A stretch of 64,000 nucleotides of DNA from Paragordius varius (GCA_964247055.1 OZ176056.1:2666001-2730000), one strand, 5' to 3'. Positions 33,421-58,768 are shown, counted from the first letter of the stretch. Notes: generated by a model not told the origin, from the letters alone. Program-made: numbers and translations.

Positions 33421-35307
33421 ATGGAAGACCCCAAGTCAGCAGTTCATAGATTTGAACCACCAGTTTTTATAAAAATAATCTTTAGCCCTTTTCAGCCTTG
33501 ACCCCAGAAGAAATTAGGACTTTGCGGGAATGTAATCGTTTATCCTTTTATTATCGTGGTATATATTTTTTTGTTTTATCTAAGCACTGCCAATTTCAAC
33601 CTTATCTATGCTTTCTATGGGACTTGCTATCCGAAACGGTATAACGATGATAAATAAAATTTAGGTTATGTGAAAAAATCATATACCATGGCAAAAATTC
33701 TCTCAGTTGGCTTGGCTGGTTTTATTATCGGGAAAGTTTCCTACATTGGAAAATGTAAAGAAATGATTAAACATTTGCCAAATAGCCCGCTTGGCTCTAA
33801 ATTAAGGCAAATCGAATCATCTCCCAACCCTACGCAGCTATATCAGGAGTTTATTAAAGAAATGTATATTTTATGTTTACATTGAAACCTTTTTTTCTGC
33901 GTACATTTTTGTGTAAAATGAATCTCTGTAACTTTTTTGATTAACATTCTTTTATATAATGATAATAAAACGGATTTTAAATTTTTTCTACTCAAAATTA
34001 TTATTGTTAACGTTATAAAACATATAAATATTAAATTTGGTTGCAATGGAATAATATGTTTTTATAAAGCCGTTATTTTAATGTTATTAACAAAATTTTT
34101 TGCAATTTTTTCATTTTTATACCGATTAAGCGTTTATTAAATATTTTAGGTCTCCATTGGCAACCAGTACGGAAAGTTCATCTCAAAATCCGCCTTCTAC
34201 TTTTAGACGGGACGATTATGATTGGCAAACAACCAAGGGATTGGATGACCGTTTTAGACCAACTTTAGATCGTAACATTTTTAAATTTAATTTATTTATT
34301 ACAAAATATTGTCGTTTTTAAATTTAAGTCTTTCGATAAAAAATTTACTTAGCGTTTTTGGGGATAAAAAATCAATTATTTTTTAAGTTTTCAGAACTCT
34401 TCATAAGTTTATCTAATGGTAAGCTGGATTTTTGTAATATAATTGCTAAAAAGATAATTATAAAGAATTCATTTACTATTTTTATGTTTGATAAAGTTTA
34501 CTTATATAGTAAACGAAAATTTTATAGTTATAAAAATAACAATTATTGCTGAATGTGCCTATTTTTAATTAAATTAACACTGCAATAAGGGGAAAGTGGT
34601 TATAAAACATCATCCGGCCTCTTACAAGACGATAATAACCCGCCATCTTTGTTTAAACCGTTTAACCAATCGATGAAAGATGCATTGCCAACGCAAGAGA
34701 GCTCTAATAAAAATGGGACCTTGTCTTATGACGAATTACGTTACCTTAATAGGCGAGGTATGGGTTCAAATATTGAATATTATGGATTATTATATATGTA
34801 TATATATATATATATATATATATATATATATATATATAATAAAATTGGATAATAAATTTTGAATGAAAATAATATTTATAATTTAATCTTTACTTATTTT
34901 AAATTTTTATCGAAATTTATAGGATTTAAATAATTTAAAACAAAAATCTATTTTAACCCTCTTTACACTAAATTGTGTGGATAATATGATTGTAAAATAA
35001 AAGCAATGCAAGGGCATTGTTGAATTCAGAGTTAACTAAAATATAAGGAAAACTTATATTGAAACTTTAAATTTTCAATTGTTTAATTATCGTTTGTTTA
35101 TTTTATCCACCAAATTTACACTAAGATTTTTGTTATTTTTTGGACGAAACTAACACAAAAAACTCGGTTTGAATCCCTAATATCAATATTTTTTTTATTA
35201 TATACATTTTTAATATTTTCATTTTAGGACAACAAGGATTAAATGCGGAATTAGGAGATTTGGGAACTAAACCCAAACCCAATGAAAGATCTCCTTATTC
35301 GTTTTGA
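33421..35307 (+). CDS. OCIAD1: OCIA-domain protein (OCIAD1/asrij-like); join(33421..33462,33486..33558,33585..33638,33665..33863,34150..34271,34590..34757,35228..35307)
   Basis: LTPEEIRTLRECNRLSFYYRALP, GFIIGKVSYIGKC, LPNSPLG, GLDDRFRPTLD and LSYDELRYLNR match the OCIA family; introns of 23, 26 and 26 nt are needed for frame; the last exon is less certain. Confidence 0.9.
34799..34838. repeat. (TA)n microsatellite in an OCIAD intron
   Basis: About 20 TA units read directly. Confidence 0.98.
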
Positions 35308-37502
35308 TTTTCCAGTTGATGCAAAAACAACCAAATTACGACAATTTGTTTTAATTCTCTATTAATACCTGTGTTTTTAGAAATTAGTATTCTTGAAATC
35401 TAAATTTTACATATATACATATCAATCAAAAATACGATCAATGTAAATTAATTTCCATACATCAAAAACAACAAAAGATGTATTTTTTGTAATTAAAACG
35501 AATTTACCTCTCTAATTTAAAATTATAAAAACAATATCAATTTTATTTTAACGTTTTATTTTCATACCTTTAGTTTTATAATTGGCTGGTTTTTATTTAC
35601 AATGCCGATTTAAATACCATCACTAATACTATTTTGCAAACAAAATTAAACATTTCAAATTAAAAGAGTTTTTTACTTTTAGGCTCAAAACTGGCAAAAA
35701 TATTTAATGTTTTTTTTGGATAAATCCTTGATTATTATCAAACAATGGACACCCATATGAGCCCCGGCCCCTCATTAGCTCTTTAAAATAAAAAGCATCT
35801 TAAAATTCTCGGCTCATTTTGATTAGATTGCCTCCGAAATCGGTAACATAAAATTATCCTGATAAAATATATTTATATTAAACCGAACATTTATTAGGAA
35901 TGTCATGGTGCTTTTGGTTTTGGCCCATACGGGTCATATAAAAAAGTTATTATAACTTTTGTGGTAACTGCTCTATACCAGAAAATGGTAAAATTTATGC
36001 ATATTTCGTTAAACAATTTTTTTTGCTTCATTCCTAAAATATTACCAAAATCTACACCTAACTACATAAAATAAAAATATTTAACAAATTTTCCTTATTC
36101 CTCAAATGTGGGCTTAAAAAGTCCTAATTTTTTGTTCATAAATGGGGTAGAATGCCTAGATGGCGCGATAAAAATATTTAAATATATGTTAATTTAATAA
36201 TTTTTTAAATAATCCATACCTTTTAGAATTATTTAATTTTTAACAACATTTTGTTGAAGCGTAGTTCACACCATTTTCACGCATGATGGAGACGATAAAA
36301 AAATGCTTGTAGATTTTATTAAAACTGTTTTTCTATATTTTTCAATGGTGCTGAACGTTTCTATGACCTCAGGACTTCGATTATATGTTTGCCTTTAAAT
36401 AGAAAAAAGTGTTATATAAAAATTATAACAAATGGGTAATTGCGTTAATATTTCTTTTGTGGGCATGGTTCAACGAAAAAATAAGGAGCTATTTTCAGAT
36501 CTTGTTTATTTATCTTGAGAATAATCATTGTCATTTTTCTACTTTCTTATCGTTTGTCACGACAAAAGATCTCCAAAATTTATTTGTTAAAATTGCTAAA
36601 ACTTTTAACAAATTTCTAAGAATAAATTTTAAACAATCAAAACATAAACCAGGCTCATTAATAAAAATTTAAAAAACTTGTTAAAAATTTCTGCAGGTAA
36701 AATGAAAGAATGCGTAGTAGGCAACACTTAAAGAAAACTAGGTAATGTTTATTAAATTTGTTAAATAAAATAAAAATTTTGCACAGTAGAGCTAAAAATT
36801 TATTAATTTTTTAAGACTTTTTGAAAATATTTTGGGGCGCACGTCACCGACCCCTGATGTGAATAATAAAATGGAAAAATATCATACATGGCAACTGACA
36901 TGTAATTTGAATACCCTTACATTAAAAATTATAGATATGGACTATGCGCTGTTTATAGTAATATGCCTAAAAGTGAAAAATTATTTTTTAATTGGCTTAG
37001 GTATCATCTAAATATTTTACAAAATAATATCGTTTAAGGTAAACAACTTTAATAAATAAACACATTAATTTTGTTGTTTATATTTTGTACTAACTGACTT
37101 TTGCCCAATATAAAAAAGAATAGCATTTATACTTAATTTGGAAATGGTAAACAATTTTATTAAAATCTACAATAATTATACTGATAATTTGATTTAATTT
37201 ATAAATGTGTTTGGCTTAGTTCTTAGAATTCTAATGTTTGATATTTACGATTTCGTTAATAAAAATATTTATAAAGCCCAACCTTTGTATTAATAATATA
37301 CTTTTAGCTCGTTTGAAATTATAAGATACACAATTTTGAGAAATTATACGTGCGTATGTTTACATGTGTAAAAATACGATTCATCTAAATGAATTAAAAC
37401 TCTTTATATGATATTTCTTGGAAACGAAAAAAAAATTTAGCTTAAAAGCACGACGTTTGAAATAATATATTCACTTTATATTTTTTTTATTTTCGCCCCT
37501 AT

Positions 37503-58146: not shown

Positions 58147-58207
58147 TTTTATTCAAATTTAAAAATTAAAACTCTTTAATATTCGGTGCGCATGGTTATT
58201 GGCAAAA
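58147..58207. promoter_or_regulatory. 61-bp bidirectional promoter/5' UTR region between the EXOSC2 and MPP6 start codons
   Basis: Divergent ATGs at 58146 (-) and 58208 (+); the spacer contains GGTGCGCATGG and ATTGG. Confidence 0.7.
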
Positions 58208-58768
58208 ATGCCTCGGCTCTCAAAAAATTTATTGAAAATGCAGGTTATCAAATATATTTATTAGTTTAGTTTATGAAGAAAAGTTCATATAATAAAGAAA
58301 TTGCGACAAAACCTAAAGATGACACAATCGAAAATATAATCATTCATACGAAAGAGTAATTCTCATAGTAAAACCTTAGACAAAAAATATTTTTTCAGCC
58401 AAGTCTTTTCATATGCAACGATTTTCCCGAAACTCATGCTCGATTCTCTGTTCGTGGTTTTAATAAAAATTATGAAGTTTTATTTTTTTATTATATGATT
58501 TAAGAAATCTTTAAACCCTGTTGAAGATGAAATAAACGAATGTGACGAAGATGAGAATATTAAATCCCAAAAGTTATTAATTTTGTACTAAGTTTAGAAT
58601 TAAAGCTCTTATTGAATCGATAGAAAAAAAGTTTACTCCCAAACAACGAGGCGGTAAACGCCGAAAAAATAAATTGCTAAACAATAAAAAAACAAGTTTT
58701 TTACTTTGATTTATCCATAATAATTTATAGAGTTTGATATAATACGTGGTGTTGAAGTTGAGGAATGA
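58208..58768 (+). CDS. MPHOSPH6: M-phase phosphoprotein 6 (nuclear exosome cofactor); join(58208..58243,58270..58355,58380..58476,58505..58572,58598..58695,58731..58768)
   Basis: MPRLSKNLLKMQFMKK (cf. LSKNLLRMKFM), PSLFICNDF...ARFSVRGFN (cf. GRMSFRGFN) and IESIEKKF. Needs five introns of 26, 24, 28, 25 and 35 nt; the last is less certain. Missed by the ORF track. Confidence 0.85.

Follow-up and report, generated by a model that had tools for sequence, protein, structure and literature searches.

Very short GT-AG segments in a 64-kb window

The window analysed here (the whole 64-kb stretch G000:C7:2666001-2730000, from a 110.6-Mb assembly of 44 contigs) contains a set of genes, among them OCIAD1, HINT, EXOSC2 (RRP4), a ZNF593-type gene, and an MPP6-like gene, whose coding sequences are interrupted by very short segments beginning with GT and ending with AG. 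Both strands were read with three-frame translations, and the GT and AG ends were confirmed by script from the coordinates. Twelve such segments of 21-31 nucleotides (nt) were found (Table 1). Excision restores the frame in every case, opening a path from ATG to stop; in HINT, OCIAD1, and EXOSC2 it also regains colinearity with Pfam models or homologues, and in the MPP6-like gene and in a small gene carrying a 21-nt segment it restores the frame alone. A first-pass annotation, made from the sequence by itself, had listed the same segments as introns (23/26/26 nt in OCIAD1, 31/30 in HINT, 27 in EXOSC2, 26/24/28/25 in the MPP6-like gene, 22 or 34 in ZNF593, and 21 in the small gene), and all 12 are confirmed here.

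In OCIAD1, which starts at ATG 33421, keeping intron 1 leads to a frameshift and then a stop. Introns 2 and 3 enclose a micro-exon of 54 nt, with OCIA model positions 5-32 upstream and 49-87 downstream, and the spliced path has 22 residues between these anchors against 25 model positions. In HINT, removal of intron 1 links '..YEDDQ' with 'CLAIKDLNP..'. Intron 2 is in frame and free of stops, as the annotation had it, and the open frame that includes it has 71 residues against 60 HIT model positions, an excess that matches the 10 codons of the segment; this 30-nt segment may nevertheless be retained in the mRNA. A search with the HINT exon against a large protein database returned one weak match.

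At EXOSC2 intron 1 the support comes from homologues. When EXOSC2-family proteins were aligned to the window with tblastn, seven of nine spanned the site; six needed a 9-residue gap at exactly this point and one a 7-residue gap, and the six align without a gap once the 27-nt segment is excised. Positions 17-37 of the ECR1_N model begin directly after it. The KH exon of the same gene served as a negative control: it carries a 6-residue insertion in which GT..AG is absent, which shows that an insertion relative to homologues need not resemble an intron, and an 18-nt intron considered at that insertion was dismissed.

In the MPP6-like gene, four removals yield five exons and 133 codons, from ATG 58208 to a stop at 58707-58709. 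The 35-nt intron that had been proposed at its 3' end proved to be an alternative to that stop, which it would exchange for a different C-terminus, and nothing favours either reading. The name MPP6 found no support: PF10175 has no match in the genome, and exon-by-exon searches of Pfam, PDB sequences, and the ESM Atlas came back blank. The small gene at 51936-52289 has an open path of 110 codons after removal of its 21-nt intron, and the TAA predicted on retention is present; its proposed name, MRPL53, is unconfirmed, exon-by-exon searches having given no support. The ZNF593-type intron has an alternative donor 12 nt upstream, giving 34 nt (52467-52500), and the frame is kept with both. A further 22-nt intron, assigned to a 'PK' gene, could not be located, and no Pkinase match is present in the window.

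Table 1. Introns, candidate introns, protein domains, and one repeat in the window, numbered from its first nucleotide
Feature	Length (nt)	Phase	Position	Strand	Basis or remark
OCIAD1 intron 1	23	0	33463-33485	+	after 14-codon first exon
OCIAD1 intron 2	26	1	33559-33584	+	OCIA model and frame
OCIAD1 intron 3	26	1	33639-33664	+	OCIA model and frame
HINT intron 1	31	0	47623-47653	+	HIT model position 14 just downstream
HINT intron 2	30		47759-47788	+	HIT residue excess; in frame, stop-free
21-nt intron, small gene	21		52087-52107	+	in-frame TAA between two open frames
ZNF593-type intron	22	1	52467-52488	-	basic N-terminal exon joined to zf-C2H2_jaz exon
EXOSC2 (RRP4) intron 1	27	2	58013-58039	-	homologue gap; in-frame TAA
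MPP6-like intron 1	26	0	58244-58269	+	frame bookkeeping
MPP6-like intron 2	24	2	58356-58379	+	frame; in-frame TAA if retained
MPP6-like intron 3	28	0	58477-58504	+	frame
MPP6-like intron 4	25	2	58573-58597	+	frame
MPP6-like 3' end, candidate intron	35		58696-58730	+	GT..AG; unconfirmed
OCIAD1 intron 4	~301	2	33849-34149	+	GT..AG joining two open frames; ends placed by frame only, no homology support
HIGD intron	1,809	1	45451-47259	-	exon 1 end '..FVPL(G)'; exon 2 HIG_1_N 6-52
HINT intron 3	405	1	47865-48269	+	HIT positions 14-73 upstream, 73-97 downstream; T-rich 3' end
EXOSC2 intron 2	247		57664-57910	-	GT..AG, exact predicted length
EXOSC2 intron 3	403		57125-57527	-	GT..AG, exact predicted length
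EXOSC2 intron 4	302 (or 296)		56757-57058	-	GT..AG, predicted length
EXOSC2 intron 5	188		56500-56687	-	predicted 191
EXOSC2 intron 6	about 810-840		55524-56333	-	ambiguous ends; several GT..AG solutions between KH_6 and C-terminal exons
MITE-like repeat in HIGD intron	~170		45518-45690		genome copy search
OCIA domain			33486-33882	+	Pfam
HIG_1_N (HIGD)			45293-45517	-	Pfam
HIT domain (HINT)			47642-48358	+	Pfam
DPAGT1, without introns			50690-51907	+	Pfam
zf-C2H2_jaz (ZNF593-type) gene			52315-52633	-	Pfam, E 5e-9
EXOSC2 RRP4 S1 and KH_6 domains			56296-57692	-	Pfam

Tests against chance and specificity for GT..AG

Two kinds of test address whether such paths could arise by chance. In the first, dynamic programming was applied to 200 composition-matched sequences per locus, with GT..AG removals of 20-35 nt capped at the number proposed for that locus. 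At each of five loci the observed open path was matched by 0-4 of the 200 simulations; the length of the MPP6-like path was equalled in four, and the 110-codon path of the gene with the 21-nt intron in none. A homology-free count of GT..AG segments bridging open reading frames of at least 35 codons across the window did not separate GT..AG from control dinucleotide pairs; the real exons on either side are short, which makes such a count too noisy.

The second kind of test, which relies on homology and is much stronger than the open-path simulations, used the Ras family. The whole genome was searched in six frames with the Ras Pfam model, exon by exon, and the length of each intron was predicted without looking at its sequence: the gap between neighbouring matches in the hidden Markov model (HMM) was tripled and subtracted from their gap in the genome. 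At 16 of the 19 junctions with a predicted length below 100 nt, a GT..AG segment of exactly that length fits both frames. Ten control dinucleotide pairs of the same composition score 0-1, and other pairs never more than 8 (Fisher p 1e-6). Eleven of the 16 introns are 22-31 nt long, on contigs C2, C3, and C5, and the others 53-86 nt. A HIT paralogue on contig C6 (L001 1559-1820; G000:C6 ~9317144-9317405, minus strand) has tiny segments of 26, 27, and 21 nt; the latter two, both in frame and stop-free, add up to exactly the 16-codon excess of this gene over the HMM.

Splice signals and spliceosomal RNAs

Signals were compiled from 26 tiny introns taken by coordinates, the 12 in the window and 14 from elsewhere in the genome. 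All 26 begin with GT and end with AG, and their lengths span 21-31 nt. The donors are GTAT (11), GTTT (9), GTTA (3), GTAC (2), and GTAA (1), so that position 3 is A or T (14 and 12 introns, respectively) and position 4 is T in 20 of 26. Interiors are 87% A+T. Upstream of AG, A is modestly enriched at positions -9 to -7, in 12-15 of the 26 introns (15 at -7), and T is found in 19 at -5 and in 17 at -3. There is no polypyrimidine tract. The yTrAy motif occurs in seven, which bears out the annotation's description of variable donors with no clear branch motif. Six of the 26 lengths are divisible by three, and three of these six are stop-free (the HINT 30-nt segment and the 27- and 21-nt segments of the C6 HIT gene).

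Longer introns of the same genome differ in their donors. GTAA begins nine of 21 longer introns compared with one of the 26 tiny ones (p 0.003); for GTAAG the counts are five of 21 and none of 26 (p 0.013). The tiny class therefore pairs worse with U1 small nuclear RNA (snRNA). The snRNAs themselves look ordinary. The best U1 copy (124 bits) begins ACUUACCUG, and the best U2 copy (178 bits) retains GUGUAGUA; with the U1 5' end and the U2 branch-site sequence both intact, the core recognition RNAs are canonical. Of the spliceosomal components that had been put forward for inspection, U2 was examined, and its branch-site pairing sequence is intact. U2 snRNA has 46 matches in the genome with scores between 38 and 178 bits, and many of them lie within a 270-kb stretch (G000:C3:257000-527000); they make up a large family whose members are variant or decaying. 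U1 copies are likewise clustered, on C6 at 565-633 kb.

Frequency and arrangement of tiny introns

Tiny introns make up 12 of the 21 resolved introns in the window and 11 of 41 Ras junctions, the remainder of which are short (nine, 46-86 nt) or long (21, 250-3,200 nt). None was seen at 32 junctions of eight CCT genes, whose introns measure 67-1,263 nt, or at six junctions of proteasome subunits. A manual reading of about 30 kinase junctions gave 43 nt as the shortest length, at a single junction. Taken together, about 110 HMM-defined junctions in these four gene families include only 11 that do not exceed 31 nt; lengths of 200-3,000 nt predominate, and the median intron length is not below 30 nt. 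The annotation's word 'pervasive' is thus too strong. HMMER reads through tiny introns that are in frame, so the junction method can miss them and the counts given here are lower bounds; many HMM matches contain internal stops.

Where tiny introns occur, they tend to be found together. Runs of three are present in OCIAD1, in the Ras loci L006 and L008, and in the C6 HIT gene, and the MPP6-like gene has a run of four. In OCIAD1 (33421-34850), HINT (47509-48360), and EXOSC2 (55300-58146), the three genes of the window that mix size classes, the series of introns opens with tiny ones and continues with long ones. A counter-example is Ras L012, with introns of 46, 1,388, and then 31 nt, and the sample is small. 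The tiny-first order is the reverse of the usual pattern, in which the first intron is long.

The ordinary introns beside the tiny ones measure 188-1,809 nt, and were placed by finding GT..AG boundaries that give the length expected from the coordinates of homologues or HMMs. OCIAD1 has two further introns of about 300 nt each. These genes thus share tiny introns with introns of 0.2-1.8 kb, in keeping with the annotation's view that one spliceosome handles both classes; its description of the 2-kb introns as 'repeat-filled' was not supported, since tandem-repeat and genome-copy searches found the 1,809-nt HIGD intron to be mostly unique. Besides a (TA)n run and a single low-copy fragment, this intron contains one copy of a repeat resembling a miniature inverted-repeat transposable element (MITE); the other ~1.4 kb of the intron is unique. 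The MITE-like element has at least 840 first-look candidates genome-wide, on all large contigs and at 75-90% identity; its matches fall on both strands, so it is internally palindromic. Tandem Repeats Finder, run over 33-59 kb, reported nothing beyond a pair of (TA)n runs and a single weak array.

Other genes in the window and the host genome

Pfam searches of single open frames bear out the annotated genes that have a domain entry in Table 1. EXOSC2 and the MPP6-like gene point apart, with starts at 58146 (-) and 58208 (+) and 61 nt between them, an arrangement that suggests a shared bidirectional promoter. EXOSC2 is a core subunit of the exosome, and the MPP6-like gene would encode an exosome cofactor if its unconfirmed name holds. 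A 249-codon intron-less orphan open reading frame at 48435-49181 (-) has no Pfam match and no homologue in a search of 5.8 billion proteins. Reverse-transcriptase-like open frames at 43784-44743 and 58911-59735 are retrotransposon fragments between genes, neither shown to be intronic. A leucine-rich repeat (LRR) gene at 37503-40212 (+) has in-frame TAA codons at ~38131 and ~38341 and an apparent +1 frameshift at a T run near 37850; no GT..AG lies near these lesions, and the picture is that of a pseudogene or of a slip in the assembly, unrelated to introns.

The host genome is nematomorph-like, most probably that of a horsehair worm, and neither dicyemid nor myxozoan; none of its contigs resembled human DNA. 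The DPAGT1 protein shares 67% of its residues with RefSeq XP_065321201 from a Gordionus horsehair worm; for the other animals listed, mostly arthropods and molluscs, identity is 51-59%. The G+C content of the window, ~27%, is like that of Gordionus montsenyensis (26.9%); the assembly is smaller than published nematomorph assemblies, which are 200-300 Mb. Contig C44 is a mitochondrial genome of 15,693 bp, with six TGA codons in COX1 and many perfect palindromes without spacer (arms of 208, 140, 138, and 131 nt, and more) that sit inside long open reading frames under the invertebrate mitochondrial code. Palindromes in mitochondrial coding sequence are described as a peculiarity of Nematomorpha (PMC6649704). 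Directly upstream of COX1, C44 also has a tandem array of ~72-nt units, each with a 49-52-nt hairpin (L026 6752-7451).

Probable introns near the lower size limit and alternative explanations

The gene structures, the specificity for GT..AG, and the runs of tiny segments are direct observations. We explain them, with a probability of roughly 85%, as ordinary GT-AG spliceosomal introns of the U2 type whose length, 21-31 nt and mostly 22-26 nt, has come down almost to the minimum at which splicing works. A standard spliceosome would act by intron definition, pairing the 5' and 3' splice sites over the intron between them and using a minimal 5' signal of GT, A or T, and T, an A/T-rich interior without a real polypyrimidine tract, and a branch adenosine that probably lies ~7-9 nt before AG. 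The same machinery would remove the 0.2-3-kb introns of the same genes. Retention should be harmless to the proteome, because 23 of the 26 tiny introns would shift the frame or introduce a stop if kept.

Several points weigh against this interpretation. The support consists of DNA and protein homology throughout, from which we infer splicing. The three stop-free, in-frame segments could be kept as coding insertions, and the position of the branch point is read from a weak enrichment of A in 26 sequences that are very A/T-rich. Tiny donors pair poorly with a canonical U1 5' end, which leaves their mode of recognition unexplained. Finally, with the names MPP6 and MRPL53 unsupported, the homology argument is missing for five of the 12 introns in the window.

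The alternative that survives best would restrict constitutive splicing to a subset of the segments. The stop-free, in-frame ones (HINT 30 nt; C6 HIT 27 and 21 nt), together with the 35-nt MPP6-like and 34-nt ZNF593 candidates, would then be retained, alternatively spliced, or not introns at all. The reading frame does stay open when the in-frame segments are retained, the two ZNF593 donors are both in frame and 12 nt apart, and the MPP6-like frame reaches a stop without removal of the 35 nt. Against this, the in-frame segments match the frame-breaking ones in A/T content and in their GT(A/T)T...AG form, and the residue excesses in the two HIT proteins equal the candidate lengths (11 residues for 30 nt; 16 codons for 27 + 21 nt). 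We regard such a mixed picture as possible, though rather doubtful.

The other alternatives deny that the tiny introns exist as such. Distant splice sites could be used instead, with micro-exons skipped and the true introns longer. The 54-nt micro-exon of OCIAD1 taken alone had no Pfam match, and exons of this kind are too short to reach a score by themselves. Skipping it, however, would lose OCIA model positions 33-48, and in Ras L006 and L008 the small exons encode contiguous HMM segments, so that we consider this explanation very unlikely. Slightly less probable again is that the segments stay in the RNA, the genes being pseudogenes in decay or the segments small insertions in the assembly. 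The LRR gene, with its in-frame stops, 1-nt frameshift, and lack of intron signals, tells us that damaged genes or assembly slips do occur here; random lesions, however, would hardly all be GT..AG segments of 21-31 nt with open, colinear flanks, control dinucleotide pairs fail the Ras junction test, and the genes concerned (exosome, HINT, Ras/Rab) have housekeeping roles and are present in single copy. Excision from the DNA, as ciliate-like eliminated sequences or germline-restricted elimination in an assembly that represents the germline, is the least credible explanation: Paramecium eliminated sequences are similar in size and some nematodes show programmed DNA elimination, but the boundaries here are GT..AG, not the TA..TA of ciliate-type eliminated sequences, and the segments obey codon-phase rules jointly with the long GT..AG introns of the same genes.

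Comparison with tiny introns in other lineages

If they are indeed spliceosomal introns, the tiny segments have counterparts in a few animals. In a 2026 survey of 51 animal genomes, the only animals with introns of less than 30 nt were myxobolid cnidarians and one dicyemid, and further cases were predicted (PMC13644364). Their introns have a median length of 22-27 nt, with no more than GTa left of the 5' signal and with weak A's ahead of AG (PMC13644364). The first-pass annotation had correctly cited dicyemids as background but omitted the myxobolids with their median of 22-27 nt, as well as the microintrons of flatworms (PMC13644364, PMC6530080). Nematomorpha are not mentioned in the main text of the survey (PMC13644364). 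Our search of the literature on hairworms and Nematomorpha found no report of tiny introns, a mention in one key genome paper being possible, and the nematomorph genome papers that it covered never discuss introns.

The introns described here have much in common with those of myxobolids (Henneguya, Thelohanellus, Myxobolus) and Dicyema japonicum. All are animal GT-AG introns of ~20-30 nt that keep, as splice signals, GT with one or two weak positions at the 5' end and AG at the 3' end, with weak A's shortly before AG, no polypyrimidine tract, and canonical U2. Short introns adjoin short introns, and the hosts are parasitic. There are also clear differences. The tiny class forms the bulk of introns in myxobolids and Dicyema and a minority here, where most sampled introns are 200-3,000 nt; the present genome, at 110 Mb and rich in transposons, is not similarly reduced; and the lineage is ecdysozoan (nematomorph-like) rather than cnidarian or spiralian.

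For the architecture of length classes, the microintrons of flatworms are the closest match. In Opisthorchis felineus and its relatives, intron lengths peak at 37, 90, and ~3,000 nt, and the microintrons are adjacent to one another, biased toward 5' ends, devoid of a polypyrimidine tract, and missed at default annotation settings (PMC6530080). Our genome likewise has several length classes (21-31, ~43-90, and 200-3,000 nt), with microintrons that are adjacent, lie toward the 5' ends of genes (OCIAD1, HINT, EXOSC2), and have lost the polypyrimidine tract. However, the flatworm peak at 37 nt is ~12 nt longer, flatworm splice sites are nearer to consensus than those found here (GTAA in one of 26), and flatworms belong to another phylum. 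Ciliates offer a more distant parallel, with a mean of 25 nt in Paramecium and 15-16 nt in Stentor (cited in PMC13644364; 10.1101/2021.08.05.455221). The size range, intron definition over a very short A/T-rich intron, and the premature stop that usually follows retention are shared; ciliates differ in being unicellular, with nearly all introns tiny and no kilobase class.

Implications for Nematomorpha

Taken together, these comparisons incline us, with some reserve, to the view that spliceosomal introns of less than 30 nt occur in a third, independent animal lineage, the horsehair worms (Nematomorpha, Ecdysozoa), as a separate, 5'-clustered size class in a transposon-rich 110-Mb genome, and that they were overlooked because gene finders reject them. 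A third case, and an ecdysozoan one, would strengthen the tie between tiny introns and parasitic life styles. Tiny and kilobase introns that share genes under one canonical U1/U2 set would also make a natural system for studying the lower size limit of splicing, and one in which the recognition of weak GT(A/T)T donors could be asked about. The default minimum intron lengths of annotation and completeness tools will break such genes. If our interpretation is true, low completeness scores in nematomorphs, such as the BUSCO value of 71.6% for Gordionus, would stem partly from mis-modelled genes rather than gene loss, and genes broken by the tools would bear on claims of large-scale gene loss in Nematomorpha.

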